IMG/VR virus record: IMGVR_UViG_3300046653_000093
Span: 1 to 64,000 of that record
Reading direction: 5' to 3' (one strand)
DNA length: 64,000 nucleotides
Part shown: positions 29,298 through 54,728 of the stretch, piece after piece
Position numbering within the stretch: position 1 is the stretch's first letter
Layout of the letters: the number at the start of each line of letters is the position of its first letter
Made by a program: the position numbers and the translations under genes
The notes under the pieces: generated by a model
Seen by the model: only the letters and a program-made list of their open reading frames with translations
Database searches by the model: none
Told to the model about the DNA's origin: nothing

Positions 29298-29305
29298 CTA
29301 ATTTA

Positions 29306-29515: not shown

Positions 29516-29586
29516 GTGTACGATAGTGATAATCGGCCTGTTTCGGGAACAGGAAATCGTCTGTTTGATTCAGATCACCTAGACCA
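29512..29586 (+). tRNA. tRNA-Pro(CGG)
   Basis: CCTGT-TTCGGGA-ACAGG; ACCA end. Confidence 0.78.
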
Positions 29587-29608
29587 ATGGTTATCATAGC
29601 ATCATATT

Positions 29609-30298: not shown

Positions 30299-30373
30299 TA
30301 CGCTATCGTGAACGAGCTTTTTGTTTTTTTTGGCGGCCAAAAGGTTATATATCAACAAATTCGTTATTTTTAT

Positions 30374-30458
30374 GCTGCTATGGTGGAACTGGTTTACACT
30401 TTCGATTTAAAATCGAACATCTAGAAATAGATTGGGGGTTCGAATCCCTCTAGCAGCA
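30374..30458 (+). tRNA. tRNA-Leu(TAA)
   Basis: TTCGA-TTTAAAA-TCGAA; long variable arm. Confidence 0.85.
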
Positions 30459-30460
30459 CT

Positions 30461-30630
30461 TGCGCACCTATCAAACAAACCTTACACGCAAAATATATAC
30501 AGGTTCGAGTCCTGTCATCCCCACCGCGCTTTGGCGCAAATTCATGGGGATGTAGCCGAAATGGAACAGGCATTGGTATAAGGAACCAAGTTGAAAAACT
30601 GCAATTCACGGTTTATTACTCAGGTGCGCA
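30461..30630 (+). ncRNA. YrlA-like Y RNA / permuted tRNA mimic, copy 1
   Basis: terminal stem TGCGCACCT/AGGTGCGCA encloses a T-arm, a loop-closed acceptor stem CATCCCCA/TGGGGATG, then a D-arm. Confidence 0.75.
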
Positions 30631-30676
30631 AAACCTTTATAGTGTTGAATTGGTTGAAAGCTAATTCATCACACCA

Positions 30677-30830
30677 AGTACATCTATCAAATCAACCTTA
30701 CAAGCAATAACGGTGGTTCGATTCCATCATTCCCCACCAGCGCTTCGGCGCAAACAATGGGGAATTAGCCTAATGGTAAGGCAAGTGACAGTAAATCACT
30801 CGATAAATAGGTTAATTACTCAGGTGTACT
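30677..30830 (+). ncRNA. YrlA-like Y RNA / permuted tRNA mimic, copy 2
   Basis: terminal stem AGTACATCT/AGGTGTACT; T-arm GGTGG-TTCGATT-CCATC; acceptor ATTCCCCA/TGGGGAAT; D-arm TAGCCTAATGGTAAGGC. Confidence 0.78.
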
Positions 30831-30836
30831 TACTAT

Positions 30837-30910
30837 GGTGGCGGAACACAAATGGCCAGTGGACACGTTGTGATCGTGTTATTTGCGGGTTCGAATCCCG
30901 TCCGTTACCC
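30837..30910 (+). tRNA. tRNA-His(GTG)
   Basis: ACACG-TTGTGAT-CGTGT; G-1 present. Confidence 0.82.
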
Positions 30911-31096
30911 CGGCTCGAAGACATGCTCCAAACATGTTACCTTTGATCGAGCCTTGCATTTGATCAGCGATGACAAAGGAACCTGATTGAATGAATCCGA
31001 TAGGCAGCCGGAGAGTAGTTATCGAAACAAAAAGCCGGTACGGAAGGGCCTGATAGATGGCAATTTATCAGACCCTGCTACTAACTAAGGATATTT

Positions 31097-31339
31097 ATGG
31101 AAGTAATTGAAACTGGTTTTAGTCATGCTCATGAAGCGGTAGCCTTTAAGATGGATAGTGGTCATGTTCTATTTTTTGGACCCAATGTCGTTCCCGGAAC
31201 AGATGTACCAACATTTCGTTTTACATATGGTGGAAGTATACCAAAGGAAGAACGTGCCCAGATGATTAAATCAATCAAAAAATATTGTAAGGAAAAAGGA
31301 TTCAGTGCTCCACTTGATTTCTTCAATTCCAAAGCATAA
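31097..31339 (+). CDS. hypothetical protein
   Basis: TAAGGA SD; 80 aa. Confidence 0.6.
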   Translation: MEVIETGFSHAHEAVAFKMDSGHVLFFGPNVVPGTDVPTFRFTYGGSIPKEERAQMIKSIKKYCKEKGFSAPLDFFNSKA

Positions 31340-31497
31340 TAAAAGAGGAGTTATGAAATCTAAACCTAGAAATTACGTCATGGCACTCATTGCCAAGAAT
31401 GACCCAACGCGATACCATACTCGCTCGGTTGAAGCCGAGCATATAAAGCTACAACGTAACAGAGCACGCCGACGCGCTAAGGAGCGCAAGGAAATAT

Positions 31498-31568
31498 GTG
31501 AAGGTAGCTCAATGGTAGAGCAATCGGTTGGCCCGATCTATGGGAGTTCGATTCCCCCCTGCACACCA
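31498..31568 (+). tRNA. degenerate tRNA with a 5-nt anticodon loop
   Basis: canonical D-arm TAGCTCAATGGTAGAGC, T-arm and ACCA; arm ATCGG-TTGGC-CCGAT. Confidence 0.6.
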
Positions 31569-31698
31569 GGAGTTATTCCTCCGCCAAGAACTCTTCAAGA
31601 CTCAGATCGTGATATAATAATAGCGGAAGCAATTGCTTGGGATAGAGAATTTTCTAAGAGAGTTGCGAATATCGAGATATATAGATAATAGAGTATTT

Positions 31699-31772
31699 TG
31701 GGACATAGTACAAAGGTAGTACAACTGGCTCTGACCCAGCACATGGGAGTTCGATTCTCTCTGTCCCAACCA
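31699..31772 (+). tRNA. tRNA-Gln(CTG)
   Basis: CTGG-CTCTGAC-CCAG; ACCA end. Confidence 0.85.
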
Positions 31773-31865
31773 TCTGGTTTATAGTGAGCCATATTGCGCA
31801 ATATGGTCTGGTAAAATCCCGAGGGTATTGTGCGTTCGATTCGCACCACTGTAGATCAGTCTTAT

Positions 31866-31936
31866 TGGGGTATAGTACAATGGTAGTACAGCTGGCTTTG
31901 ACCCAGTATACGGGAGTTCGATCCTCTCTACCCCAA
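31866..31936 (+). tRNA. tRNA-Gln(TTG)
   Basis: GCTGG-CTTTGAC-CCAGT. Confidence 0.87.
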
Positions 31937-31949
31937 CTTCAAAATATAT

Positions 31950-32031
31950 GTCCAGCTGGTGGATTTGGTATACACAACAGTTTAAGAAGCTGTCGCCGTA
32001 AGGCATGCGAGTTCGACTCTCGCGCTGGACA
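31950..32031 (+). tRNA. tRNA-Leu(AAG)
   Basis: ACAGT-TTAAGAA-GCTGT; variable arm GCC-GTAA-GGC; A73. Confidence 0.82.
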
Positions 32032-32267
32032 CAAGATCCTTTCCCTGGCGGGGAGACGTCACAGTGGTTCGAATCCACAACTGGATCGAGATTTGTAATT
32101 GATAACTACTGATCATGGTAATTCAATTTCAAATCGTTATGCTCAATTGGTTAATTACCGCTAGTTCAATTCTAGCGTTGAGCACGAATTCACTTTCTAC
32201 ACAGATTAGGAATGTCCTAGTAAGCAAACCACCGAAAGGATGTTAGGCTTGGGAGTGCGTATGTTAT

Positions 32268-32340
32268 GCAGCAGTAGCTCAGTTGGTAGAGCAGTAGCCT
32301 GAAGAGTTACGTGTCGTCCGTTCGACCCGGACCTGCTGCA
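32268..32340 (+). tRNA. tRNA-Phe(GAA)
   Basis: GTAGC-CTGAAGA-GTTAC. Confidence 0.85.
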
Positions 32341-32343
32341 CTA

Positions 32344-32465
32344 GAGGTTGGTTCTTGGTTCGATCCCAAGATAGATATGCAGTGCCGATAGGCCATTTCC
32401 CGCTCAATTAGTGTACAATAATTCGAAGGAAAGTAATACTATTAGCTCATTGGTAGAGCAGCCTC
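32344..32465 (+). ncRNA. third permuted tRNA-like RNA
   Basis: closing stem GAGGTTG/CAGCCTC; T-arm CTTGG-TTCGATC-CCAAG precedes D-arm TAGCTCATTGGTAGAGC. Confidence 0.6.
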
Positions 32466-32470
32466 GCAAT

Positions 32471-32543
32471 GGACTCTAAACTAATCTGGTGAAAGTGCTT
32501 GTCTGAAAAGCAAGAAAGCCCGGATCGTAACCGGGAGAGTCCA
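32471..32543 (+). tRNA. tRNA-Phe(GAA)
   Basis: CTTGT-CTGAAAA-GCAAG. Confidence 0.78.
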
Positions 32544-32714
32544 CTTACAGATATGAATCCTAGAATAGCCAAACACCAAGTTGGCGTTTACAATTAGGAT
32601 AACGGTTTCGTCTCTTCCGGACATACGGGAGACGGCAAACTCGTAGCGAGGCGAGGGCGATAATTCTGAGGTCGCAAAGTCTCAGAAACAACATCTAGAT
32701 AATAAAACTTAATA

Positions 32715-32789
32715 TTGTAGAGTAGGCAAACAGGTAAGCCGGCGGATTGTTACTCCGTTGATTTGGGGGTTCGATGCCCTCCTCTACAG
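32715..32789 (+). tRNA. tRNA-Asn(GTT)
   Basis: GCGGA-TTGTTAC-TCCGT. Confidence 0.8.
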
Positions 32790-32794
32790 CTAAT

Positions 32795-32866
32795 GGCCCC
32801 ATACACTAATGGCTAGGTGGGCAGTCTTTCTAACTGCAGGTCCGAGTTCGAATCTCGGTGGGGTCA
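32795..32866 (+). tRNA. tRNA-Glu(TTC)
   Basis: GCAGT-CTTTCTA-ACTGC. Confidence 0.82.
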
Positions 32867-32880
32867 CTGATAGAAAATAC

Positions 32881-32954
32881 GCCTCCATCGTCTAACGGTT
32901 TAGGATCGCTGTTTTTCACACAGCAAATGAGGAGTTCGATTCTCCCTGGAGGTA
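32881..32954 (+). tRNA. tRNA-Glu(TTC)
   Basis: GCTGT-TTTTCAC-ACAGC. Confidence 0.87.
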
Positions 32955-33143
32955 CTGATATATAAGCCAATATGTGTATTGCAACAGAACAAATATGCGA
33001 AGCTTGTGGAGAGAAATATTGGCAAGGAGATCTTCGGTTCGATGAATTACTGAAATGTGATGAGTGCCGAGGAATCAAACTACTTCCAGAGGAATATCCT
33101 CTAACAAGAGAACAATGGTTTGAAACTATAACCAAATTACAAC

Positions 33144-33227
33144 GCTAACGTGGCGGAACTGGTATACGCAGCAGCTTCAGAGACTGCCGTCGATTTAGAC
33201 ATAAGGGTTCGATTCCCTTCGTTAGCA
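33144..33227 (+). tRNA. tRNA-Leu(CAG)
   Basis: loop TTCAGAG; long variable arm. Confidence 0.85.
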
Positions 33228-33352
33228 CCTGAAGTAGCTTGAGCCTAATGGCAGAGCTAGAGTAACAACTCTGGTTGAGAGTTTGAATCTCTCAGTTACT
33301 TCAATACTATTAAATACTGAATATTGTGATATAGGCTATGTTAGTTGCTTTT

Positions 33353-33423
33353 GCCCTCATCGTTCATTGGAAGGATGCTAGCTTGTCACGCTAGAGAGAG
33401 GAGATCGATACTCCTTGGGGGCG
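33353..33423 (+). tRNA. tRNA-Asp(GTC)
   Basis: CTAGC-TTGTCAC-GCTAG. Confidence 0.82.
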
Positions 33424-33495
33424 CAAAATTGTCAGGCTATATTCTGACATGGGAAATAAGGTATATGGAATAATTATTATCATAGAGGTGTTCTA

Positions 33496-33816
33496 ATGTC
33501 ACAAAGTCTTAGGGAATCTCCACAACATTCAATTGCTCCCAGTGATGCAGAACACCATCCTAAAACCTTGGAACAGGCAGTCATTGCGCTAGATAATATG
33601 CTCAATGAAGAAACTAAATTGTTCCTTTCCGCTCTTAAAACAGAAGCTGCAATTATAGAACTTCATCATACGCTTGGACGCTATCTTAGAAATAAGTGGT
33701 GTCTGTGGAGTGGCTCAGATCTTGCTAGGCATATGAAGGAAGTTCACGGAATAGACCACCCAGATGATATGTCACATGCAATTCTGGTTGCATATTGTAA
33801 CAGTATTGTGAAATAG
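33496..33816 (+). CDS. DUF6794-like hypothetical protein
   Basis: HHTLGRYLRNKWCLW..GIDHPDDMS. Confidence 0.65.
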   Translation: MSQSLRESPQHSIAPSDAEHHPKTLEQAVIALDNMLNEETKLFLSALKTEAAIIELHHTLGRYLRNKWCLWSGSDLARHMKEVHGIDHPDDMSHAILVAYCNSIVK

Positions 33817-33870
33817 TCTCGGTCGAGAAAGCTACATTCTGGGTATTTACTAATAAACCAAGAATACGAT

Positions 33871-34734
33871 ATGAAATCTACAAAGTGGATTTTGATAGTC
33901 ACCGCTTTACTCGCGTGTATATCTGCAAAGAACATTCATCACGGCTCAATAGCCACTGCGCAAGAGCCGGCCTTAATTACCAAAGAACAAGATTTTGAAC
34001 TTGACTTCTTGACAGAAACTTACGACGAAAGTAAGTTCTCTTCACCAGCCGAATATCCGCCACCAATTTGCCCAGATGATATGATTGAAATATCTGGAGA
34101 GTATTGTCTCTTTGTAAAAGAAACATGTTTGAAGTGGATAGATGCGGATAATAAATATCCATATATGTGCGAGAGGTTTGAATACCCAACAAAGTGTTTA
34201 TCAAAAACCGTACATATGAATTTCTGTATCGATAAATTCGAAGCGCAAACTTCAAAAGATGAAATTCCAGAAGTCTTTATTGATTGGTTCACTGCAAAAA
34301 CTAGATGTGAATCTTCTGGTAAAAGATTGTGCGATGTACGTGAGCTTACCTTGGCCTGTGAAGGGCCAGAATTGAAACCATATCCATATGGTTATATAAG
34401 AGATATTACAAAATGTAATACTGGAAACTCATGGATTGATCCTGATAAAACTCCATTTGAAAAACTAGATCGAAGAGTTACTAGTGGCAAATATGAAACT
34501 TGCAAATCAGATTTTGGAGTGTATAATGGCATTGGGAATGTTGATGAGTGGTCAATTAATTCTGAAGGATCAATGACAAAGGCTCCATATAAGAGCGCGC
34601 TGTTCGGTGGGCATTATGTAAATGGAATCAGAAATAGATGTAGAGATCAGGGAGTTCCATCTGTTACAACATCCCATGGCCCTGGCGCAAAGAACTACGA
34701 AATCTCATATCGGTGTTGCTCAGATGTGAATTAA
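33871..34734 (+). CDS. formylglycine-generating-enzyme (SUMF1/FGE-sulfatase) domain protein, secreted
   Basis: signal peptide; CPDDM, FCIDKFE, GKRLC, YPYG, SDFGV..GNVDEW, YRCC. Confidence 0.85.
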   Translation: MKSTKWILIVTALLACISAKNIHHGSIATAQEPALITKEQDFELDFLTETYDESKFSSPAEYPPPICPDDMIEISGEYCLFVKETCLKWIDADNKYPYMCERFEYPTKCLSKTVHMNFCIDKFEAQTSKDEIPEVFIDWFTAKTRCESSGKRLCDVRELTLACEGPELKPYPYGYIRDITKCNTGNSWIDPDKTPFEKLDRRVTSGKYETCKSDFGVYNGIGNVDEWSINSEGSMTKAPYKSALFGGHYVNGIRNRCRDQGVPSVTTSHGPGAKNYEISYRCCSDVN

Positions 34735-34741
34735 TATTTAT

Positions 34742-34820
34742 ACCTCCATAACTCAATTGGAATCAGAGTGTCTCTCTTCTAAAGAGAATGTTGTGGGTTC
34801 AACTCCCTCTGGAGGTACCA
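34742..34820 (+). tRNA. tRNA-Arg(TCT)
   Basis: TCTCT-CTTCTAA-AGAGA; ACCA end. Confidence 0.82.
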
Positions 34821-34857
34821 AGATATATGCAGTACAAACCGGAAGTACTAAATATAC

Positions 34858-34930
34858 GCCCCTTTAACTTAACGGATTAGAGTTCCTGCCTTCGAAGCAG
34901 GGAGTGGGAGTTCGATTCTCTCAAGGGGTA
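34858..34930 (+). tRNA. tRNA-Arg(TCG)
   Basis: CCTGC-CTTCGAA-GCAGG. Confidence 0.85.
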
Positions 34931-35185
34931 CTAAAGGAAATATATGTCAGCAAATATGTTTATCAGACAAGCAGAACGAAACTCTTGTAGTGTAGGAAGT
35001 CTCAATAGAGGCTGGGACTGGCAAAATGGACACTGTAAATCTTTTGGGTTTAAGAAAGGTTTGCGTCGAGCAAGGCGCAGAGTCTCCAAGAAGATCATCG
35101 AAAGAGAATTAGCGGAGGCATGATGGCAGAGAAAGCAAGAATGCAAGAAGCTGAAATGAATATCGGTAATAGAGGAAGTCTTCTA

Positions 35186-35231
35186 GAATGCGGTAATCGT
35201 AAGGGCTTGAATGCGGTAATCGTAAGGGCTT
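35186..35231 (+). repeat. perfect 23-bp tandem duplication
   Basis: GAATGCGGTAATCGTAAGGGCTT x2. Confidence 0.9.
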
Positions 35232-35354
35232 GGTTGAGAATCTGAAGCGCGGCTTGCGAAGGGCACGGCGCAGGTTTTCAAAGAAGCTGATTGAGATAGA
35301 GTTGAAAGATGTGGCACCAAAAGCACATCATAGATAATGGCCGCGTAACTCAAT

Positions 35355-35430
35355 GTTCCTGTAGCACAATGAATGGTGCAGTTTCCTCCTAAGAAAACGG
35401 TTGTGAGTTTAAATCTCACCAGGAACGCCA
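35355..35430 (+). tRNA. tRNA-Arg(CCT)
   Basis: loop CTCCTAA; GCCA end. Confidence 0.8.
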
Positions 35431-35463
35431 ATATAGTCGAGAAACTTAATTCGCAGTTCAATA

Positions 35464-35964
35464 TGAGTGAATCATAGGAGAGCTGTGAATAAATGGACAA
35501 AAGAAGAATTCGAAGACGCAGTAGTAAAAAGCAAAAGCATCAAAGAAGTATTTCTACGTTTAGGAAATTCTACCACTGGATATAATACTTTCCACAGATA
35601 CAAAAAGCTATATAAAATTGATACATCTCATTTATGTGGACAAATACTTGCTGGGAAAAACCAAAAGGGGCGAGTCCATCAACGGCCACTAAGCGAGATT
35701 TTAATCAAAGATGGCACTTCCCTAAAGATCAGATTGATTAAAGAAGGTCTGTTAGAAAACAAATGCAAAATCTGCGGTATAGACAGCTGGGATGGTAAAC
35801 CATTGACTCTGCAATTAGATCATATCAATGGAGATCACTGGGACCACAGAATAGAAAACCTTAGGATACTGTGTCCAAATTGTCATACTCAAACAGACAC
35901 ATATGCAAATAAAAAAGGAAGTAATAAGAAACCTCTAAGACGTGTAAATGCGGTTGTGATATAA
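35464..35964 (+). CDS. HNH homing endonuclease; Zn/HTH tail continues in another frame to about 36167
   Basis: CKICG..LQLDHINGDHWDHRIENLRILCPNCH. Confidence 0.88.
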
Positions 35965-36144
35965 CATATCACTCAAGCACATGCAGAAAATGCCGGCAAG
36001 GAAATAAAAAGATCATTTGGCCAAGTTTAGAGTTCCTGGAAAAGTCCATACAAAACAGTAACTATTCATTTGTAGCCAAACAGCTTGGAGTGTCTGATAA
36101 TGCTATAAGAAAACACCTACAAAAATTAGGTGTTGAAGTTGTGA

Positions 36145-36217
36145 GCCCCTATAGTATAACGGAATAGAACAAGACCCTACGAAGGTTGAGATACAGGTTC
36201 AAATCCTGTTGGGGGTA
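36145..36217 (+). tRNA. tRNA-Arg(ACG)
   Basis: loop CTACGAA. Confidence 0.8.
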
Positions 36218-36218
36218 C

Positions 36219-36290
36219 TATCCTGTAGCTCAATGGTAGAGTGCCTCCCCGACTAGGAGGAAGTCGTCAGTTCGAACCTGACCAGGATAA
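36219..36290 (+). tRNA. tRNA-Val(GAC), atypical loop
   Basis: CCTCC-CCGACTA-GGAGG. Confidence 0.7.
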
Positions 36291-36297
36291 CTAACAT

Positions 36298-36368
36298 GGG
36301 CACTTAGTTAAATGGTAGAACGCCTCTTTTACACGGAGAAGATAACAGTTCGATTCTGTTAGAGCCTA
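36298..36368 (+). tRNA. tRNA-Val(TAC)
   Basis: loop TTTACAC. Confidence 0.78.
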
Positions 36369-36380
36369 CAAAGATTTCAT

Positions 36381-36451
36381 GGGCCATTAAGTCAATGGAA
36401 GACTCGCAGACTTTTAATCTGTAAACATCAGTTCGATCCTGATATGGCCTA
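36381..36451 (+). tRNA. tRNA-Lys(TTT)
   Basis: GCAGA-CTTTTAA-TCTGT. Confidence 0.85.
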
Positions 36452-36455
36452 CTAT

Positions 36456-36526
36456 AGAGGTATAAGTCAACGGTAGACTAGCGGTCTCTTAAACCGTCTA
36501 TGAGAGTTCGATTCTCTCTACCTCTA
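36456..36526 (+). tRNA. tRNA-Lys(CTT)
   Basis: GCGGT-CTCTTAA-ACCGT. Confidence 0.87.
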
Positions 36527-36829
36527 CTCATAAAAATGGTCGAGAAGTATCCATATATTATACTTAATATATGGATACTAAATAGCAAATTACACAAATT
36601 AGGAATTGATTGGAGTCATTATTCATTACCAACTCAATTGGTAAAATGACGGTAGTTCGTAAAGGAGATAGAATAATCAAAATAGGAGCGTCGGTCCGGT
36701 TAAGGCTCGTGAGGGTTTCCCTCCACACTCACGAAGTATCATCGTCCAATAACAACCCTGGATTCGTCCTGGACTTGTAGGATCAGGTTAAGTGCCGAGA
36801 TGGAAGACAATCTCCCTAATACTTCTTAT

Positions 36830-36901
36830 AGACCATTGGTGTAACGGTAACACAGCTGCCTCCAAAACAGTTAGATGCGGGTTCGAATCCTGTGTGGTCT
36901 G
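36830..36901 (+). tRNA. tRNA-Trp(CCA)
   Basis: loop CTCCAAA. Confidence 0.83.
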
Positions 36902-37198
36902 CAAGATAAATATGTAACCAAATACTCTTTGGTAAAACATAGATATATAACTAAACATGCTTACTAAAGAAGAACGCAAAGCAGAATTCTTAAGATTGAT
37001 GGAAGTTACATCTGATTTAGAATGTACTTTCTTAGCTGGCAATCCAGATGGTATTAGTATATGCGCTTATTGTGATTGTTGGTGGCATGTTGGTGACATA
37101 CCAAAACATACTTCAGGTTGTAATAGACCAAATCAGGATACGTGAGGTAACATGAATAACATACAAAAACTACAGTAAATCACAAAAGCAGAGATTGG

Positions 37199-37335
37199 TT
37201 GGATGATAGTAAAGAGAATCTTGAGTTCTTGTGTCCAAATTGCCACAGTCAAACAGATGGATGGTGTGGTAGTAAATATGAAATTGAACTTTTTAGTGAA
37301 GTAGAACACTCAAGAAGAGCACGTGTAAGAAGACA
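37199..37335 (+). pseudogene. HNH endonuclease remnant
   Basis: only DDSKENLEFLCPNCHSQT remains. Confidence 0.6.
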
Positions 37336-37337
37336 AT

Positions 37338-37419
37338 GTCAGCGTGGCGTAACGGCAGCCGCAGCAAGCTTAGAACTTGCTGAGTAATACTCGTGGGGGT
37401 TCGACTCCCTCCGCTGACA
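37338..37419 (+). tRNA. tRNA-Leu(TAG)
   Basis: GCAAG-CTTAGAA-CTTGC; long variable arm. Confidence 0.87.
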
Positions 37420-37612
37420 CTATGATAACTTATCTATTAACAAAGATGTTTTATTTTCTATTCAGTGTTTGTGGACCTTTGCGTACAGCCGCTGGAACAG
37501 CAGAACGCAGATTGTATAATGAACATCTTGGTGATATATGGGTATCAAAATATGATGTACAGATGCCAATAATATCGGAAGATGTTACTGAACCTGAATT
37601 AGATATAAAGTC

Positions 37613-37906
37613 ATGATGACAGATTGTCCACTTTGTAGTCGAGAAGTTCCCCACCGGAGCGATCATCATTTGACTCCTCGCTCTCGTGGAGGGAAGGTTA
37701 CACTTCCAATATGTTTAGACTGTCATAAGTCAGTACATGCATTTTTCACAAACAAAGAATTGGAAGATAGATATAATACAGTTGATGCGCTTTTAGGGGA
37801 CGAGAAGTTCGCCAAGCACATCAAATGGTTGAGTAAGCAAGACCCGAACAGGAGATATAGAACTGTAAGGGTTTCCGAAAAGAAACATCGAGGAAGAAGC
37901 GGATGA
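37613..37906 (+). CDS. small HNH-fold protein
   Basis: CPLC..HHLTPRSRGG..CLDCHKSVH..TNKEL. Confidence 0.8.
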   Translation: MMTDCPLCSREVPHRSDHHLTPRSRGGKVTLPICLDCHKSVHAFFTNKELEDRYNTVDALLGDEKFAKHIKWLSKQDPNRRYRTVRVSEKKHRGRSG

Positions 37907-38085
37907 AAGTATACGAGTTAATTGAAAAGCTTTCGGAAATGCCGCAATTAGCAAATGTAAATATTGTGTTCGATACTGGTTTTGCGAGTAGAGATATTGA
38001 AAGCGTTTATATAGATTGGGAGAATGAATATCCTACTATATGTATAGATGAAGGTAAAATGTCTCGGATCGTCTCGGAGTGATAT

Positions 38086-38157
38086 GGGCCTGTCATATAC
38101 GGGTTAGTATGCAATTCTTATAAATTTGACAAGATGGTTCGACTCCATCCAGGCCTA
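38086..38157 (+). tRNA. tRNA-Ile(TAT)
   Basis: loop CTTATAA; body closely resembles the adjacent tRNA-Ile(GAT). Confidence 0.75.
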
Positions 38158-38191
38158 CGCAATCTATCAATAACTTAGCAGATACATATTA

Positions 38192-38263
38192 CGGTCTATC
38201 ATATAATGGTTAGTATGCAAGTCTGATACACTTGTCACGATGGTTCGAGTCCATCTAGACCGA
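38192..38263 (+). tRNA. tRNA-Ile(GAT)
   Basis: CAAGT-CTGATAC-ACTTG. Confidence 0.85.
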
Positions 38264-38386
38264 CTGGGTAACGCGAAAAATAGTTCGGTTCTTGTCTTGT
38301 TCATGTGTGTTTCTTTCGTTTCTGGGTTCGTGACTTGTTGATTTGGTTTTCGCGTTACCCTTTTCTTTGCCCCCATCTTCTAACGG

Positions 38387-38959
38387 CTAGGAGTGATTTA
38401 GAGTAGCTAAGTGACACTTTTTGCATCTATTAGCATCTGGAGATATTTTTCGGTTACACTGCTCGCAGCGATGGTGATTTACTTTACCCTTCCTACCAGA
38501 AAACGTAGGCGTCTGAGTATGGCAATTGGGACATAATATCCTTAGATTTTCTAATCTGTTATCATCATGATCTCCGCTTATATGGTCTAGTTGCAACACT
38601 AACGGCTCTCCATTCCATTCATTACCTTGGCCGCATTTGAAGCATTTATCATCAAAAATATTGGAACTGATGAGCCGATCTTTCAATACTTGAGAATTTA
38701 CCTTAATTCCATTTTGCAAATACTCTGATATATCTTTTTTAGGACCAAACTTTCGGTTTCTGTTCGAGGCCAATCCCAACGTTATATGACCATAGCTGAT
38801 TTCATCTTCAATCAATCTTCTCTTGAGGGTTTTGTAGTTTCCGCTTCCAATCCCGAAATGTTCTAGAATCTCAGCTAAACTCTTGCAGGCATTGACAATT
38901 TCTTGAAATTTTTCAGTAGTAGGTTTATATATTACACTAGTCTTTTTTCGGTTTACCAT
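38387..38959 (-). CDS. HNH homing endonuclease, antisense within the tRNA array
   Basis: CFKCG..LQLDHISGDHDDNRLENLRILCPNCH. Confidence 0.9.
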   Translation of the reverse strand: MVNRKKTSVIYKPTTEKFQEIVNACKSLAEILEHFGIGSGNYKTLKRRLIEDEISYGHITLGLASNRNRKFGPKKDISEYLQNGIKVNSQVLKDRLISSNIFDDKCFKCGQGNEWNGEPLVLQLDHISGDHDDNRLENLRILCPNCHTQTPTFSGRKGKVNHHRCEQCNRKISPDANRCKKCHLATLNHS

Positions 38960-39002
38960 ATAAGGACATATATCAATATACATAGATGTCCTTAGATAAT
39001 TC

Positions 39003-39073
39003 GGCTCCATCTTCTAATGGCAGGATGACGCTCTCTCTAAGCGCCAATGCGAGTTCAAATCTCGCTGGAGTCA
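39003..39073 (+). tRNA. tRNA-Glu(CTC)
   Basis: CGCT-CTCTCTA-AGCG; Glu-type D-arm. Confidence 0.75.
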
Positions 39074-39074
39074 C

Positions 39075-39160
39075 TGCGGGAATGTAGTGCAAAGGCGGCA
39101 CACGAGGCTCATAACCTCGTCCGAAAGGCGCGATAGGTTCGATTCCATCTCCCGCTACCA
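39075..39160 (+). tRNA. tRNA-Met(CAT), initiator-like, with long variable arm
   Basis: CGAGG-CTCATAA-CCTCG; unpaired 1:72; ACCA end. Confidence 0.75.
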
Positions 39161-39380
39161 AATGGAAACGTTCAGACCAGGCGTATATAGTTGGTCAAAG
39201 AAGTGTGCAACCAAAACAAGTAACCGAAAACGCGCTGAATGGTACTTGTATAAGAAGGAACATAAGTCGCATTACCATCAACGTATTCGGCAAATAGGAG
39301 ATTCAGATTACCACTACGATTTTGATGGAGACTACGATCTCTTTGGTTGGTATGATATTCAGTGTGGAGATCATTAGTAT

Positions 39381-39455
39381 GTCGTGGAACCCAAAAGGCT
39401 AGGGGCCTGTCTGCAAAACAGGTATTTGTGAGTTCGACACTCACCCACGACTCCA
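39381..39455 (+). tRNA. tRNA-Cys(GCA)
   Basis: CCTGT-CTGCAAA-ACAGG; U73-CCA. Confidence 0.85.
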
Positions 39456-39457
39456 AT

Positions 39458-40138
39458 ATGGCAGCTAATTTAGGCACTAGAAAATCATGGACTGACGAGC
39501 AAATGTCAAAGGCAGTAGCTCAAGCACTTTCAATAGCCAGCACACTTAGGTTATTGAATATGTCACAAACTGGAGCTAATTATATAACAGTAAAAGATGC
39601 TATAAATCGACTAAGCCTAAACACTTCACATTGGACAGGGATTCATCATAGGAAGGGAAAGGCGTTAATTAATCCAAAGAAATCACTATCTGAATTATTG
39701 ACTGAAAACTCACGAACACAAACATCGCGTCTAAAACATCGACTCATAAAAGAAGGTCTGCTTACCAATCAATGCTCCGTATGTTGTCAAGAGCCTAGTT
39801 GGAAAGACAAGCCTCTGGTAATGGTGTTAGATCATATAAACGGAATAAATAATGATTTTAGATTTGAAAACCTAAGATTACTTTGCCCTAATTGCAACAG
39901 CCAGCAATCAACATTCGCTGGTAGGAACAATAAAAGTAAAAGAGGGCCAGGTCATTTTTGCAATAACTGCAATAGAAAATTAACAGCACTTAGAAAATCT
40001 GGTATGTGTAATGTTTGTAACAATAAATCCAGATCAAAATCAAGCCAAGGTGATGGAATGGCAGACATGGTAGCCCCAAACACTACTGCCGCAAGGCGTG
40101 AGGGTTCGACTCCCTCTCTTGGCACTTATGATAATTAG
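39458..40138 (+). CDS. HNH homing endonuclease
   Basis: CSVC..VLDHINGINNDFRFENLRLLCPNCN; frame runs through the downstream tRNA-Leu. Confidence 0.88.
   Translation: MAANLGTRKSWTDEQMSKAVAQALSIASTLRLLNMSQTGANYITVKDAINRLSLNTSHWTGIHHRKGKALINPKKSLSELLTENSRTQTSRLKHRLIKEGLLTNQCSVCCQEPSWKDKPLVMVLDHINGINNDFRFENLRLLCPNCNSQQSTFAGRNNKSKRGPGHFCNNCNRKLTALRKSGMCNVCNNKSRSKSSQGDGMADMVAPNTTAARREGSTPSLGTYDN
40044..40124 (+). tRNA. tRNA-Leu(CAA)
   Basis: loop CCCAAAC; variable arm GCC-GCAA-GGC. Confidence 0.78.
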
Positions 40139-40411: not shown

Positions 40412-40702
40412 GCTTCAATTTTTCTTGCAATCGCTACCGAGATTTGTTAGGGTGGCAAAGTCATCCGGCCGCTTCGCGGTTGGAACCCTACTATCAATCG
40501 GGTGAAGCTGACGCCCAGCCAACCAATCAGTGGTGCTTACACGGCCCCATATAGATCCCATAGTTACGCGCTCCTTTCACAGCCCCATTAACTCGGTTGG
40601 CTGGGCGTTATTTACGAAGTACTCAATTGAATACATGAACAAAATCGAATAGTTGCTTCATGTCAAACAACATCTAGACAAGAGATGTTGTTTTGGGGTA
40701 TA

Positions 40703-41227
40703 ATGACCTACATGGATCCGAAGCTATTCTCAGTTGCCGCCCTGATTCCAATCGGCAATCAGGTTGTTGCCGTTTCTCGTAAGACCAACCACAATGACTT
40801 CGGTCTGCCGGGAGGTAAAATCGATCCTGGCGAGACTCCGGAAGAAGCTCTCGTGCGCGAGCTTCACGAAGAAACCGGTATCACCGCAACCAAATTCAGT
40901 GTTGTCTACGAAGATTGGGACCGCGTAGAAGGTGGTGAACCGCGCCCATGCCGAACGTATCTGATCGAAAAATGGGAAGGCACTCCGCAAGCCACTAAAG
41001 AGAGCGCAGTAGTGACGTTGCTTTACCCAAAGCAATTGATGAATCCAAGCAATACTTTCTGCAACTACAATTACAATCTGTTCAATCATCTGTCAAAAGA
41101 AGCAAGCTTTCGTAAAAAGCTAATTGAAATAGCGAGTCTATATGACGATGATGAAACAGATCCTAATATAGAAATTACTCGCGTTGATATACCAAGATCA
41201 AATCCATCTTGGCCAGTTCCAACATAA
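40703..41227 (+). CDS. Nudix hydrolase
   Basis: GLPGGKIDPGETPEEALVRELHEETG. Confidence 0.92.
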   Translation: MTYMDPKLFSVAALIPIGNQVVAVSRKTNHNDFGLPGGKIDPGETPEEALVRELHEETGITATKFSVVYEDWDRVEGGEPRPCRTYLIEKWEGTPQATKESAVVTLLYPKQLMNPSNTFCNYNYNLFNHLSKEASFRKKLIEIASLYDDDETDPNIEITRVDIPRSNPSWPVPT

Positions 41228-43675: not shown

Positions 43676-43990
43676 TTATTTCTGACTTTCCTTTGGGCGC
43701 AAGAATGCCCGACACATATTCAATCTACCTTCGCTGGTAAAAAGATCTTTTGTAAGATTTGGAGCTTCTTTCATGATGATGGAAGCTGGAATTGTCCACT
43801 CTTTCATCTGCTCATCTTCTACAAATATTCCGCCAATAAACGCCACCCAGCCATATCTGCCCCTGTTGGGATCATCGGCAGGAATGATTTCGTGAGTGGG
43901 ATGCTCTGCCATGAACTTGGTAACATCGTCCCAAAGATCTTGGAAAGAATCCCAATCACTATCCAGCTTATCATATATTGATGACATCAA
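43676..43990 (-). CDS. hypothetical protein
   Basis: overlaps the vWA stop. Confidence 0.6.
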   Translation of the reverse strand: MMSSIYDKLDSDWDSFQDLWDDVTKFMAEHPTHEIIPADDPNRGRYGWVAFIGGIFVEDEQMKEWTIPASIIMKEAPNLTKDLFTSEGRLNMCRAFLRPKESQK

Positions 43991-44658
43991 TCGTCCGTTT
44001 TAAGTGATTTGACCTCAGCATCATTCAACAGCGCAACCGAAGCGGTAAACAAAACGCCTTCAGCTGCCTTGTCTCGACGTCGAGTTACGCCACCTGATAT
44101 ACCCTTGTATGCATTACTAGTTCCGCCATGATTGGCAGAGTAGTTATACGTGTTGCTGGCACTGAAACCCAAAGCAGCGCCCTGGCTAAATGCAGCATCT
44201 CCGCCACCTAGGAACGTGAATGTCCAGTTGTACTTCTCGGTCTGGTGTTTCACCATCTCGGCAATCTTTGATGCAACAATGTATTCCTTGGAAGAATTCT
44301 CTTCTCCGTCCGTAATGATGAGGAAGATTACCTGACCTGGGCGTTCCTCTTCCTTCATCTTGGCAAAGCGTTCACCAACAGTTACGATGGTCTTACCAAC
44401 CGCATCAAGAAGAGCGGTGCTGCCACGTGGTCTATAAGTATCACCCGTCAAATCCTTTACGGATTGAATATCAACTCCATCATAGTCAATTTGATATTGG
44501 TCATCAAACTGTACAAGAGTCAATTTTGCCTTTCCTGAGTTCTTCTTTTGTTCAGCTAGGAAAGTATTGAAACCACCAATGGTATCGTGGCGGAGACTAC
44601 TCATAGAACCAGAGCGATCAAGAATAGCAACAATCTCAGTTAAATTAATATCAGTCAT
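43987..44658 (-). CDS. von Willebrand factor A domain protein
   Basis: MIDAS ILDRSGSM; PRGSTALLDA; IITDGEENSS. Confidence 0.92.
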   Translation of the reverse strand: MTDINLTEIVAILDRSGSMSSLRHDTIGGFNTFLAEQKKNSGKAKLTLVQFDDQYQIDYDGVDIQSVKDLTGDTYRPRGSTALLDAVGKTIVTVGERFAKMKEEERPGQVIFLIITDGEENSSKEYIVASKIAEMVKHQTEKYNWTFTFLGGGDAAFSQGAALGFSASNTYNYSANHGGTSNAYKGISGGVTRRRDKAAEGVLFTASVALLNDAEVKSLKTDD

Positions 44659-46890: not shown

Positions 46891-47235
46891 AATTAGATAC
46901 TAGAATAAGCAAATATATAAACCTAACAAGAATTTACCTGTGGTTTTTGTCTTGTACTATATACTTTTTGGGATTTATTTTCCTTAATATTATCTCTGCC
47001 CTTTACCTTTACTGTTATACTTGCTACGCAATGAGGGTTTTCTTTGATTGCTTTTACAATATCCATTTTAACCTCTGAGGGCATTTGTGTGCTATTTACC
47101 GCACTATTAAATGCCAATTTATGTGCGGCCCCATTTTTGTTGACATTTCGTGCGCGCTTTGGTATTCAGGCATCCGAGCGCGGTAATTCAGATCGCGCAC
47201 CCCCAAACGAACATTGTTGTTGAATAGGAGAATTT

Positions 47236-49861
47236 ATAGCCAACGAAGATAGCCGTAGGGATAGGGATATAGTGCTCGCACCAAACGAGTACATGTACGT
47301 TAGCGATCAAACCAAGGGAAACATTGACGTTTTCGTTGGTCCCACCAAGCAGAGTTTGTCGGGAACTGATCAGCCCGTAATTTTTGATGACAAGTCAAAA
47401 CGATTTATTCCGGCCGAGACGCAAGATCAGGCAAAGCAATTGAGTAAGACAGCCCCCGAAGGCTGGTATATTGTTTTGAAAAATCCGGCGCAGAACGGAA
47501 AGCAACCTACTGCAAATTCCGGAAAATTGTCCAGCGCAGATTTGGACGTGGGCAAGAAAGTCATCGTACCAGGCCCGGTTACATTCTGTCTGTGGCCAGG
47601 TCAAATGGCCAAGATACTCAAGGGCCATCACCTTCGTTCCAATCAATACCTGCTATGATGAGTACGAGGCTCACCAGAATTGGAAGAAGGCTGTTGTCAA
47701 GGCAGTTGCCCCAACTGATGCAGTGAAGGCCGACCCCGCTACCTGCAAGATAGGGGAGCTGGCTGATTCTCCACCACCTCCACCGCTTACCCTGCCCGAT
47801 CCTCCAAACTTGACAATGGGTCAAGTGATCGTGATCAAGGGTACTGACGTTTCATTCTACATTCCGCCAACTGGTGTTGAAGTTGTTCCAGATGACGATG
47901 GCCAACTGGTCCGAGAGGCTGTCACACTTGAACGTCTCGAATACTGCTTGCTGATGGATGAGCAGGGAACCAAACGATACGAGCGCGGCCCCGCCGTTGT
48001 CTTCCCAGAGCCCACCGAAGTGTTCATCACTCGTGAAGGTCAAGATGGAGAGCCTGTTCGCAAGTTCCGCGCAATCGAACTGAGCGAAAACTCTGGCATC
48101 TACATCAAGGTTATTGCCGAGTACACAGATAACAAGACTGTGCATAAGGTTGGCGAAGAGCTGTTCATTACCGGGAAAGACAAGATGATCTATTTCCCGC
48201 GTGAAGAGCACGCCATCGTCAAGTACGAGAATCGCGAGATTCATTATGCAATCGCGATTCCTGCCGGCGAAGCGCGGTACGTTCTCGATCGCAACAAGGG
48301 TACTGTTTCCTTGGTTGTTGGTCCAAAGATGTACCTTCCAGATCCTAGAAACGAAGTTATCGTTCGAAGAATCCTTCCATACAAGACCTGCAGCTTGCTG
48401 TACCCGGACAACACCACCGCCTTTGCTCACAACGCTAGGTTGGCCGGTGTTGATCTTGATACATACATGAGCCATCAGGGCGCTGAGGCGGTTAGTGCGG
48501 CAGTGGCAAACGCTCCTGCGGCAGCGATGAACTTCCTAGCTGCGACGATGGATTACGAATCTTCGCATGTGATGTCTCGTTCGATTGGCAGCACAGAGAC
48601 TTCGCGCGGGCTTGGCACAAAGGCTGGGACAAAAGCAGCTGGCGATGCATTCCAACGCAAGACCAAGTACACCGAGCCTCGTTCAATTGTGCTTTCAACC
48701 AAGTACGATGGTGCGGTTGCCATCAATGTCTATACCGGCTACGCAGTTATGCTGGTTAAATCGGATGGTTCACGGCGCGTTGTCGAAGGACCGCAGACCG
48801 TTCTGCTCGATTATGATGAGACTCCTGAAATTCTTGAGTTGTCTACTGGTAAGCCGAAGACGACGGACAATCTGTTCCGCACCGCCTATCTGCGCACCAT
48901 GGCAAACAAGATTGGTGACATCATCGAAGTTGATACGAGTGACTTCTGCAAGTTCCAGTTGAAGCTATCCTATCGAATGGACTTTACTGGCACGCCAGAG
49001 TCTTGGTTTGGCGTAGAGAACTACGTCAAGTTCTTGTGCGATAATCTTCGCTCGCGTCTCAAGAATGCTGTTCGCAAGCACGGCGTTGAAGACTTCTACA
49101 AGAACAGCACTGACATCATCCGTTCTGCAGTTCTCAAAGAAGCAACTGATGGTAGCTTTGGCCCACGGCTATTCCCAGAGAATGGAATGCAGATTTATGA
49201 CGTCGAGGTTCTCAAGGTCAGCCTTGTCAATGACGACATTGAGAAACTGATCGCGCAATCGCAGAAGGCAATCATCCAGACCACGATTGCTCTGGCCAAC
49301 CAGAAGAGAACTCTGGAAGCTGGTATTCAAGAAGAAGACATCAAGCAGCAAATGGCCGAGGTCAAAGCCAAGACCAATGCTCGAATTTTTGAGCTGGAAG
49401 CCGAGGAGGCTAAGCGCAAGCAGGAGTCTCAAACAGTTGTCATCGAAGCGCAATCCGAAACGACAGCTCTCAAGCTCACCAAAGAACTCGAAGCCCAGCA
49501 GTCAAAGAACGCAGTGTCACTTGAAGCGCGCAAGAATGAGCAAGCGATTGCTGATTTCGAACTCGCTCAAGAGAAGCAACGACTCGACCTCAAGATCGCT
49601 ATGATCCAGGCCGAGATTGAAGCTATCGTCAAGAAGTCCGGCGCAATCACGCCAGACCTCATCTCTGCTCTTCAAGCCTTCGGAGATAAGGATCTTGTGC
49701 TCAAGGCTGCCGAAGCGATGGCTCCTCTGTCCATCATTGGTGGTTCAAGCATTGGCGATGTTCTTTCGCGGTTGCTTGCTGGAACTAAACTTGAGAGCAT
49801 TGCCAAGCTAGCTACAAGCAATGGAGCTAGCAACGGAGCTTCTCAAAGCGCTCACCGATAA
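47236..49861 (+). pseudogene. major vault protein (MVP)-like gene split by one frameshift near 47654
   Basis: repeated beta modules ending GP/GEE; SPFH-like shoulder YVKFLCDNLRSRLKNAVRKHGVEDFYKNSTDIIRSAVL; FPENGMQIYDVEV; long cap helix; AGGAG SD before ATA at 47236. Confidence 0.78.
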
Positions 49862-49887
49862 TCGAATCTGATTGTTCGTATTGGGTT

Positions 49888-49925
49888 GAAGGCCCAGGTA
49901 GATGCCTACCTGGGCCCTTCATTTT
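49888..49925 (+). terminator. intrinsic terminator after the MVP-like gene
   Basis: GGCCCAGGTAG-ATGC-CTACCTGGGCC followed by a T-rich tail. Confidence 0.8.
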
Positions 49926-50330
49926 AACTGTATCTATTTTTGGAATATATTAAAGCACAATCAGCAAGATTGTTTATGTGCTGATGTAAATCTCTATTAA
50001 CTTGATTAGACACTACTTTTAGTGCGGCAGTTAATAATTCATCAGCTAGTCTTAATGTGTTATCAATTTCAGCTTTAGTCTTTTTCATAAATTCTCCAAT
50101 TAGGAATTGTCTTCTGGAACTGGCCACGCCCCTGGATTCTGTTGCCTGAATTCGTTCACTCGCTGCTGCCAATTATCGTAACGCTCGAAAAATGAACGCA
50201 TCCTTCTTTGGCCGGCTCCCAGTTCACTATTTACAGCCCTGCCCAAAAGCCATCCCTCTTGCTCCAAAATGTACGCGCCTTCTGCTTCTAATTCCTGTCT
50301 AGTTGTAATCATATCATCACCTATACCTAC

Positions 50331-52887: not shown

Positions 52888-52977
52888 GTGCCCGTCGCTC
52901 AGTGGTCGAGAGCAACAGATTCTAAAACTGTCGCAGCCGAGAGGCTGCCATCGTGGGTTCGACCCCCACCGGGCACA
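52888..52977 (+). tRNA. amber suppressor tRNA (anticodon CTA), class II
   Basis: acceptor GTGCCCG/CGGGCAC; D-stem GCTC/GAGC; ACAGA-TTCTAAA-ACTGT; variable arm GCAGCC-GAGA-GGCTGC; T-arm GTGGG-TTCGACC-CCCAC. Confidence 0.85.
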
Positions 52978-53113
52978 CTATTATGGAACAAGAACCAGAA
53001 GAGCCGGTCCACGAACCTCCACCAAAAGAGCACCCAGATATCGAGCTTGATGGTGGTGGCAAACTTACTTGGTGCGAAATATGTGAATCATATTGGCAAT
53101 GCGGGTGTGGGTA

Positions 53114-54067
53114 ATGCCAAAAAAGATAATTGTAGTTACCAAGAAAACATCTTATTCAAAATACATCCAAGACCAAGATGATGTCGGTTCAAAGGAGTTA
53201 TTGCTAAGTGCAAATCCAGCTGTTGCGTTTTGGAAATCATCTCACAACAGTCATATGAAGACTCTTGATATTGTTGTGTCGGAGATTCAAAAACAGAATT
53301 TTGTCTGCCACGTAATTGATTCTAAATCATTTGTTGCCGAGCCAGATGATGTTGAAATGGTTGTTACTGTTGGAGGAGATGGGACATTACTATCAGCTTC
53401 TCACAACGTAAATAGTGCACTGCCAATTCTTGCAGTCAACTCCGATCCATCAACTAGTGTTGGGTTCTTCTGCTATACAACATCAAATACTTTTCAAAAT
53501 CATTTATCATTAGCATTAGATGGTAAATGTCCCAATACAATTCTAACAAGAATGAGTGTTAGAAAGAATAATAAGATAGTTGCGAATAGAATATTGAATG
53601 ACGTATTGTTCTGTCATACAAATCCAGCGGCAACATCTAACTACATCATTCAATTAATGAGTCGCCGCTCCCTAACTCCAGCGGCTGGAATGTCTGTTGG
53701 ATCGCGCGTTTCTCCGATGTCGCTGCAGGAAACTCAAAGATCAAGCGGAATATGGGTTGGACCTGCAGCGGGTAGTACGGCGGCTAGGCGTTCTGCCGGG
53801 CTTTCGCCGATGGATCTTGAATCTAAAGACTTGCAATTGGGGGTCAGGGAGTTGTACTATAAGCCATCCTCGAAGCCAGGCACACGATTTATGATGGCTG
53901 CCCCAGGGCAATTCATCAAAGTAATTAGCAAGATGGATAGTTCTGCTATGTATCTTGATGGAGATTACAGTGTAATTCCTGTTGGTCTTGGAGATGAAAT
54001 AAACTTCGAGAAATCCGATGACTCTCTGCAACTCTTAGGAAAACCAAATGTATTTTGTGGTAAATAG
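53114..54067 (+). CDS. NAD(+) kinase
   Basis: VTVGGDGTLL, LNDVL, SSGIWVGPAAGSTA, LDG. Confidence 0.9.
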   Translation: MPKKIIVVTKKTSYSKYIQDQDDVGSKELLLSANPAVAFWKSSHNSHMKTLDIVVSEIQKQNFVCHVIDSKSFVAEPDDVEMVVTVGGDGTLLSASHNVNSALPILAVNSDPSTSVGFFCYTTSNTFQNHLSLALDGKCPNTILTRMSVRKNNKIVANRILNDVLFCHTNPAATSNYIIQLMSRRSLTPAAGMSVGSRVSPMSLQETQRSSGIWVGPAAGSTAARRSAGLSPMDLESKDLQLGVRELYYKPSSKPGTRFMMAAPGQFIKVISKMDSSAMYLDGDYSVIPVGLGDEINFEKSDDSLQLLGKPNVFCGK

Positions 54068-54251: not shown

Positions 54252-54728
54252 ATGATTCTTGGAATAACTGGGCACAGACCCAGTGTCTTAGGCTGTGGTT
54301 ACGATATACCAAATCCAACTTATGACCGTATCTGTCAACAGATAAAAGGTGAATTCATCGAGCTAAAACCAGAGAAGATAATTTCTGGTATGGCCCTTGG
54401 GGTAGATCAGTGGGCCGTGAGTATTGCAATGGAACTTGGAATACCTTTCATTGCAGCTGTGCCTTTCAAGGGACAAGACTCACGGTGGCCAGTTAAGAGT
54501 AAAAAGATCTACGAGGATATGTTGGGCTCGGCAGATCGAATAGTCATCATTGGAGAACTTACCTCAAATAACTTTGCCGAACTAATGTTCTTGCGCAATA
54601 GATGGATTGTTGACAACTCATCAGAACTGTTAGCGGTATGGAATGGAGATCGTAAGGGCGGTACATTCTCTGCTATCAATTATGCTGAGAAGAAATCAAA
54701 TTACCATATTCGCGTCATAAAACCATGA
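54252..54728 (+). CDS. SLOG-family protein (YspA/DUF1273-like)
   Basis: ITGHRP, ISGMALGVDQWA, RNRWIVDNS, GGT. Confidence 0.88.
   Translation: MILGITGHRPSVLGCGYDIPNPTYDRICQQIKGEFIELKPEKIISGMALGVDQWAVSIAMELGIPFIAAVPFKGQDSRWPVKSKKIYEDMLGSADRIVIIGELTSNNFAELMFLRNRWIVDNSSELLAVWNGDRKGGTFSAINYAEKKSNYHIRVIKP

Follow-up and report, generated by a model that had tools for sequence, protein, structure and literature searches.

A major vault protein gene, probably inactivated recently, in a huge phage from peat

The stretch of DNA analyzed here (64,000 nt; the window) is the first 64 kb of the 216-kb IMG/VR contig 3300046653_000093, and it carries a plus-strand gene encoding a true full-length homologue of major vault protein (MVP). 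The host element is a huge peat phage of at least 392 kb. In this lineage the start codon is lost and the frame is shifted by an 11-nt deletion, and the locus is probably best explained as a recently inactivated copy of a phage-borne MVP gene. The initial annotation of the window had described the gene as phage-encoded. This is supported, because the window begins a 216-kb viral contig and the same phage is represented by a 392-kb IMG/VR contig from another metagenome (IMGVR_UViG_3300021077_000115). The window also contains PHROG-family genes and 45 tRNA genes, almost all of the latter in plus orientation.

The MVP gene lies at 47140-49926 as the one plus-strand gene between minus-strand genes on both sides, and a one-gene transcription unit is therefore plausible. 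A putative promoter (47140-47174, +) consists of TTGACA at 47140-47145, a 17-nt spacer and a TG-extended, weak -10 element, TATTCA. The -35 element, the spacer length and TTTGGTA were conserved in the intact orthologous locus L001 despite diverged sequence around them. A consensus promoter scan, which demands T at position 6 of the -10 element, omitted the 47140 site. The Shine-Dalgarno (SD) sequence AGGAG (47226-47230, +) gave an anti-SD duplex of -7.3 kcal/mol and was conserved in the intact orthologue. An ATA codon (47236-47238, +) starts five nt after it. From this codon the coding sequence runs to 49861 (+) as 875 codons in two frames. Piece 1 (47236-47655, +; 140 codons) corresponds to the first beta modules (R1-R2 equivalent) and is followed by a TGA stop in frame 1 (47656-47658, +) with a second TGA directly after it. 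Piece 2 (47654-49861, +; frame 2) has 735 codons plus the TAA at 49859-49861, and comprises further beta modules, the Vault_3 repeat, the shoulder, the cap helix and C-terminal helices. In tblastn comparisons with the intact orthologue P0002, piece 1 was 96% identical to residues 1-139 and piece 2 was 85% identical. An intrinsic terminator (49891-49926, +) follows, with a hairpin at 49891-49916 made of an 11-bp stem (8 G-C) and a 4-nt loop, and a T-rich tail. The G+C content of the gene was about 0.50-0.53, compared with about 0.39-0.45 in the flanks. The promoter candidate, the SD-spaced ATA, the roughly 875 codons in two frames and the strong terminator had all been read by the initial annotation, and each was recovered here.

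Sequence searches with piece 2 identified the gene as MVP. The Pfam profile MVP_shoulder (PF11978, SPFH-like) matched at 48905-49231 (+; piece-2 residues 418-526) with E = 9.1e-28 and 97.1 bits (cut-off 25), taking in 116 of 118 profile positions. Upstream of it the Vault_3 repeat (PF17795) matched at 48764-48871 (+; residues 371-406; E = 1.9e-9, 38.0 bits, cut-off 28.8). Both profiles were matched by all 46 relatives. The Vault profile PF01505 was sub-threshold in the window and matched 13 of the 46 relatives, with E-values down to 1e-7. A phmmer search of PDB sequences returned MVP chains alone (about 2e-20), and the alignments covered the last repeat, the shoulder and the cap helix. HMMER paired the cap-helix stretch with residues 640-814 of human MVP. 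The cap-helix equivalent, a continuous helix of about 137 residues, was placed at 49232-49642 (+) by offset of the orthologue-model helix 675-811 from the shoulder match. Piece 1 alone gave no match in Pfam and none among PDB sequences. Since piece 1 was too diverged for sequence methods, an intact orthologue was modelled.

The structure model was that of P0002 (884 amino acids, aa; 85% identical), built on the 46-sequence alignment. Its mean predicted local distance difference test score (pLDDT) was 61; the first module, the shoulder and the helix were good, and the region of piece 1 scored 60-80. Beta modules extended from residue 10 to about 385, followed by an insert that is helical or disordered (about 388-490), more beta structure, an alpha/beta shoulder (566-672), a single helix (675-811; pLDDT about 80-84) and short C-terminal helices. 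The order of beta modules, shoulder and long helix proposed in the initial annotation was thus confirmed on the intact-orthologue model. In a Foldseek search against PDB, the top 12 matches were full-length human, rabbit and rat MVP (6e-27 to 8e-21), with alignments of 908-1012 columns. The TM-scores were low (0.2), in keeping with a long flexible monomer model. MVP R1-R7 crystal structures ranked next (1.5e-9), and flotillin, HflK/C, prohibitin, erlin and stomatin ranked later (2e-7 to 1e-4). A beta-sandwich repeat array is present N-terminal to the shoulder, with a repeat number that is uncertain where the model is poor. Pfam, PDB sequences, Foldseek and the relatives were therefore in agreement on an MVP homologue.

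A flotillin/band-7 (SPFH) membrane scaffold would share the SPFH-like shoulder, and weak Band_7 matches in 20 of the 46 relatives as well as the SPFH cages in the Foldseek list point in that direction. However, Band_7 reached 21.2 bits in the orthologue, under its cut-off of 23.6, compared with 97 bits for MVP_shoulder. Structurally, full-length MVP chains were better by about 20 orders of magnitude, the MVP repeats are present, and a hydrophobic anchor is absent. A membrane scaffold of this kind is extremely improbable, and the outcome that the initial annotation had named as contrary to its proposal, a best match to a band-7 protein without MVP repeats, was not what we found. The highest 19-residue hydropathy was 1.33 with no hydrophobic segment, and the protein is predicted to be soluble, as MVP is.

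The lesions were defined by DNA alignment with L001, which has 81% nucleotide identity, the same neighbours and an intact gene, encoding P0002, at its positions 8893-11547. The former start codon at 47236-47238, ATG in L001 and Met at the N-termini of the 46 relatives, is ATA in the window. No ATG, GTG or TTG occurs between the upstream in-frame TGA (47221) and a GTG at 47272. The second lesion is an 11-nt deletion, TCGTCTGCGTT being missing after 47653 (junction 47653-47654, +), which shifts the frame by +1 and is not located at a slippery run. It takes four residues, part of a conserved L-V-R-V strand, and among them one invariant Val and one Arg kept in 43 of the 46 relatives (93%). Of the single frameshift without slippery run that had been described before, the frame change and the missing run stand, but the event was not a one-base slip. 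A third change turned ATG into ATA at codon 12. This change is neutral, because 18 of the 46 intact relatives carry Ile (7), Leu (10) or Val (1) at this position, and therefore the loss of the start codon alone counts. Selected silencing of the 5' end, suggested by ATA in place of both ATGs of the first 12 codons, was rejected on the same ground. The long frame carries no further damage, in agreement with the earlier description of an otherwise intact frame. The start-codon loss and the deletion together probably block synthesis of the full-length protein in this lineage.

The broken allele is not an artefact. The 392-kb contig was 100% identical to the window over the 22.6 kb compared, and Logan contigs of two runs were 100% identical over 13 and 18.8 kb and carried the same gene calls of 128 and 712 aa. 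Peat metagenome contigs from runs X4 and X6 crossed the deletion junction without difference, and a contig from run X7 covered 47198-47373, including both ATA codons, with zero differences. These peat runs came from several studies between 2021 and 2025. Metagenome assemblies can hold indel errors, and run X4 also contained, at lower depth, a diverged strain with exactly the 11 missing bases and a G at 47271, so that an assembly or sequencing error in a gene that is really intact had to be considered. However, an 11-nt deletion outside a homopolymer is atypical of read error, and the allele was identical over 13-22 kb across separate runs, years and pipelines. The variant bearing the 11 nt is another strain, because it differs at many other sites. 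An artefact is hardly credible on this evidence. Of the two possibilities offered by the initial annotation, that the inactivation is recent or artefactual, the former was retained and the latter was not.

Comparison with the intact orthologue indicated that the loss is young. Against L001, the synonymous divergence (dS) was about 0.98 and the ratio of nonsynonymous to synonymous divergence (dN/dS) was 0.07, falling to 0.013 in the first 139 codons. With L004 as outgroup, lineage-unique amino-acid changes numbered 32 in the window and 31 in L001, showing no excess in the window. A neutral phase taking up a fraction f of the branch is expected to add roughly 900 x f replacements, and from these counts the unconstrained fraction would be less than about 2%. 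The inactivation is therefore likely to be recent and the window copy a fresh pseudogene. When 80 viral loci were fetched with the family profile, two belonged to the window's own phage and only these two were truly interrupted; the other 78 were uninterrupted, answering the call of the initial annotation for intact phage orthologues. The MVP gene of L077 (540-2948) has TGA at a Trp conserved in the family, so that TGA apparently encodes Trp (code 4) in this phage. That the family is under purifying selection is shown by these sequence comparisons.

These results suggest the following history. The ancestor would have had an intact one-gene unit with promoter, AGGAG, ATG, about 884 codons and terminator, and its product would have consisted of N-terminal beta-sandwich repeats, the SPFH-like shoulder, the roughly 137-residue helix and short C-terminal helices. 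By analogy with vaults and SPFH cages, ring closure of intact orthologues would depend on the cap helix and shoulder, and inside the infected cell such proteins would most likely self-assemble into a closed, soluble shell resembling a vault. In the lineage of the window, the start ATG would then have become ATA and the deletion at codon 140 would have shifted the frame and removed the conserved strand. The cage made during infection that the initial annotation proposed does not apply to this copy, without start codon and frameshifted, and may hold for intact orthologues only. Across the sampling years 2021 to 2025 the lesions are fixed in the phage population, and for this reason the phage probably replicates without the protein, which makes MVP an accessory gene, not an essential one.

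Rescue of the protein, in full or in part and by all routes together, is unlikely. One such route is the synthesis of split or truncated products, either a 128-aa fragment from GTG 47272 accompanied by a body of about 680-712 aa, or just that body. It would start at GTG 47723 or ATG 47816, and the waist-forming repeats would be lost. The gene callers give the 128-aa and 712-aa products in independent assemblies. GTG 47272 is preceded by an SD-like AGGGA (-6.9 kcal/mol) and could yield the 128-aa fragment, and ATG 47816 lies just past a low-confidence linker, where the next beta module begins. The long frame is free of further damage, and most genes of the window lack a strong SD anyway. However, an intact long frame is equally predicted by recent inactivation, no SD-like sequence was found at any in-frame start after the break (0.6 to -3.1 kcal/mol), none of the 78 other viral loci is split, and the deletion cuts a conserved beta strand, not a linker. 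Products of this kind are therefore improbable, both as a pair and as a body that starts downstream.

Recoding would require initiation at the SD-spaced ATA and a prfB-like +1 frameshift at CUA-UGA (47653-47658). The ATA occupies the ancestral start position five nt after AGGAG, and the required shift is +1 and falls exactly at a stop codon. A stop codon is known to stimulate +1 shifting in prfB. Nevertheless, a Leu tRNA reading CUA cannot re-pair on UAU, no SD-like stimulator was present upstream of CUA-UGA, and the arrangement is not conserved, the relatives being uninterrupted with 11 more bases. The shifted product would still lack the four conserved residues, and bacteria initiate very poorly at ATA. 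The phage-encoded tRNA with anticodon TAT (38086-38158) was considered as an initiator-like tRNA for ATA and rejected; it resembles an ordinary elongator, because its anticodon stem is AT-rich and 1:72 is paired. Reading of ATA as Met was likewise rejected, since ATA encodes a conserved Ile elsewhere in the gene (K-I-L-K), and the TAG-suppressor tRNA of the window (52888-52978) is irrelevant to a block made of a frameshift followed by TGA. Recoding is accordingly very unlikely.

Several points weigh against a recently inactivated MVP gene whose intact orthologues form shells. The monomer model of P0002 is only moderately confident, with several beta modules below pLDDT 50, and cage assembly by prokaryotic and phage homologues is something we infer from architecture; any cargo or ligand is likewise putative. 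Only about one quarter of the long open reading frames (ORFs) of the window have a strong SD-like sequence, so that a missing SD before internal starts is weak evidence. Residual translation may occur from ATA, GTG 47272 or internal starts, and no RNA run was among the sequencing runs listed for the MVP gene. A second MVP copy was not found in the 64-kb window, a search that covers 64 of at least 392 kb.

The MVP family was found to be far larger than published reports suggest and common in huge phages. In silico descriptions exist of phage MVPs from two gut Caudoviricetes, ctOa11 and ct2Ri15 (bioRxiv 10.1101/2023.11.10.566534), and of MVP-like genes from Borgs (10.1101/2024.11.05.622173). Many of the proteins found here are labelled 'major vault protein' by the Joint Genome Institute (JGI). 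With in silico phage MVPs on record since 2023 and these labels, the novelty claimed for the phage gene was overstated, but to our knowledge experiments have not been reported on any prokaryotic or viral MVP. Among the candidates scored, more than 6,600 matches were significant, and 1,339 clusters were counted at 50% identity. At least 192 contigs of IMG/VR, many of them 100-436 kb long, carried relatives, as did 359 bacterial species genomes, including Nannocystis chromosomes. The earlier statement that homologues exist in a few bacteria was therefore too narrow. Nucleotide searches of the phage collection gave zero matches, while protein-level matches were obtained in three unannotated published huge-phage genomes. 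BFVD contained no phage MVP model, and the closest full-length match there was a giant-virus protein. This entry, A0A3G5A4K1 (Harvfovirus), an 802-aa 'prohibitin domain' protein, aligned over the whole length of the phage MVP model (2e-10) and may represent an MVP-like protein from a eukaryotic giant virus.

The phage orthologue resembles eukaryotic MVP (rat, human, rabbit; PDB 4V60, 4HL8, 9BW5, 9Z4W) in length (884 aa compared with 861-893) and in the order of its parts, with beta repeats, an SPFH-like shoulder, a very long cap helix and a short C-terminal part. MVP_shoulder, Vault_3 and a keyhole G-[KR]-P-K are all shared with the phage family. However, identity in the structural alignments is only about 17-19%, fewer repeats are confidently recognisable in the phage orthologue, and the insert at about 388-490 is a further difference. 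TEP1, vPARP and vault RNA, known from eukaryotic vaults, were not found in the window, and the window copy is broken. The MVPs of ctOa11, ct2Ri15 and the Borgs are likewise located on viral or virus-like elements outside structural gene modules, whereas the window copy differs from those of ctOa11 and ct2Ri15 in coming from a peat phage of at least 392 kb, in belonging to a large environmental radiation and in being a pseudogene. Bacterial MVPs (Nannocystis, other Myxococcota, Cytophagales, Riflebacteria, Sericytochromatia) are 45-50% identical to the phage orthologue over the full length and display the same architecture, but are chromosomal, for example on Nannocystis replicons of 11-13 Mb, and not phage-borne. 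SPFH cages (HflK/C, flotillin, prohibitin, stomatin, erlin) have an SPFH domain and a coiled-coil wall resembling the phage shoulder and helix; they are membrane-anchored and without N-terminal MVP repeats, whereas phage MVP has no hydrophobic segment.

Conservation within the family is highest at L-S-x-G-K-P-K-[TN]-x-D. Its G-K-P-K (48848-48859, +) aligned by HMMER to the human keyhole loop G503-R504-P505-K506, and the four columns were kept in 46, 45, 46 and 46 of the 46 relatives. Basic residues of the human keyhole loop contact the diphosphate of nicotinamide adenine dinucleotide (NAD+) or ADP-ribose (PMC12280208; 10.64898/2026.05.01.722283). Other human pocket residues are not conserved in the window protein; among the ligand-contacting residues, W545 is replaced by Met and the equivalent of H509 by Asn. 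For this reason NAD+/ADP-ribose binding by phage MVP, suggested by the sequence of the loop, is put forward as a lead and not as a finding.

In a second major viral MVP clade, a gene for a 500-540-aa Ro60/TROVE-like protein (Pfam DUF2828 + DUF7788) shares the strand of the MVP gene and is located 0.1-6.3 kb away from it. These loci lie outside the window and comprise L033 (6471-12457) and 35 further viral loci (L084-L159). A model of the TROVE-like protein (pLDDT 72) had solely TROVE/Rsr/Ro60 structures as its top Foldseek matches, among them 9kop, 2nvo, 1yvr and the phage phiLo Ro60 9l5y (2e-7 to 5e-5). Among loci selected for the TROVE-like gene the pairing was detected in 36 of 80, among those selected for MVP in 16 of 79, and it was confined to one clade (32 of 47 rows, compared with 0 of 43 in the clade of the window). 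The TROVE-linked loci also carry calcineurin-like phosphoesterases and a kinase-HD protein, downstream of tRNA arrays. One neighbour cluster proved to be an antisense shadow of the TROVE-like gene and was discarded. A TROVE-like gene was not found in the 64-kb window, the best tblastn match (E 0.034) being an unrelated FGE-sulfatase-like ORF, and no Rfam families other than tRNA were found at 40-56 kb of the window. The TROVE domain is the contribution of TEP1 to eukaryotic vaults, and the viral adjacency of MVP and TROVE thus appears to echo the eukaryotic MVP and TEP1(TROVE). No report of this viral linkage was found in a literature search.

It is conceivable, though doubtful, that intact MVPs build vault-like shells in infected bacteria as an RNA- or nucleotide-centred counter-defence module. 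Three observations point in this direction: the TROVE synteny near RNA-repair-type enzymes and tRNA arrays, reminiscent of the MVP-TEP1(TROVE)-vault RNA particle of eukaryotes; the keyhole G-K-P-K held constant across the family; and the position of the window gene among tRNA, NUDIX, NAD-kinase and SLOG genes. If such shells exist, phages or bacteria would possess an equivalent of the vault ribonucleoprotein, and the broken copy would be a trace of the module's disappearance from one lineage. What vaults do has been an open question since 1986, and common huge-phage MVPs under strong purifying selection, together with a TROVE-linked clade, would offer tractable systems for it. The window copy indicates that a huge phage can lose MVP and persist for years in the field, and therefore that MVP is either accessory or of use in certain circumstances only. 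Taken by itself, the locus is an unremarkable fresh pseudogene; the family, and above all its TROVE-linked clade, merits experimental study.

Within the huge phage, the window forms an accessory region. The tRNA genes are distributed over 17853-62074, with the main array at 28381-40125, and the MVP gene sits between tRNA clusters. The TAG-suppressor tRNA mentioned above has anticodon CTA and a long variable arm and was labelled 'Pyl' by ARAGORN. TAG still terminates 10 of the 65 long ORFs of the window, therefore any recoding would be partial or stage-specific. Across the viral loci, a tRNA gene was present within 10 kb of MVP in 37 of 80 (1.9 tRNA per 10 kb), a figure that, lacking a genome-wide background, is not evidence of enrichment near MVP. 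No neighbour gene was universal across the phages, the best occurring in 19 of 80 loci, and three neighbour clusters that occur mostly in the window's clade had zero Pfam matches. In the window, a 223-aa von Willebrand factor A (vWA)-domain protein (PHROG 7371) is encoded at 43987-44658 (-), 2.6 kb upstream of the MVP gene, and this gene is conserved in L001.

Further genes of the window included an NMNAT-NUDIX fusion (8862-9911), a second NUDIX gene (40685-41227), an NAD kinase (53093-54067) and a YpsA-type SLOG gene (54252-54728). Two candidate anti-defence genes encode an Apyc1-like metallo-beta-lactamase of the anti-Pycsar family (7907-8785; 109 bits) and a 2H phosphoesterase (Acb1/LigT-like; 16801-17406) with a weak match to Acb1 (anti-CBASS). 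The window also encodes PhoH, ATP-binding cassette (ABC) transporter components (20650-23828), namely a substrate-binding protein that carries a fused OmpA-like domain, a permease and an ATPase, and an IS607-like pair consisting of a serine recombinase with a MerR helix-turn-helix domain (1851-2474) and a TnpB/Cas12f-like protein (3219-4646). The Logan contigs L002 and L003, which are independent, both stop exactly at window position 56480, where the IMG/VR contigs run on, and this position may be a strain-variable or repeated boundary.

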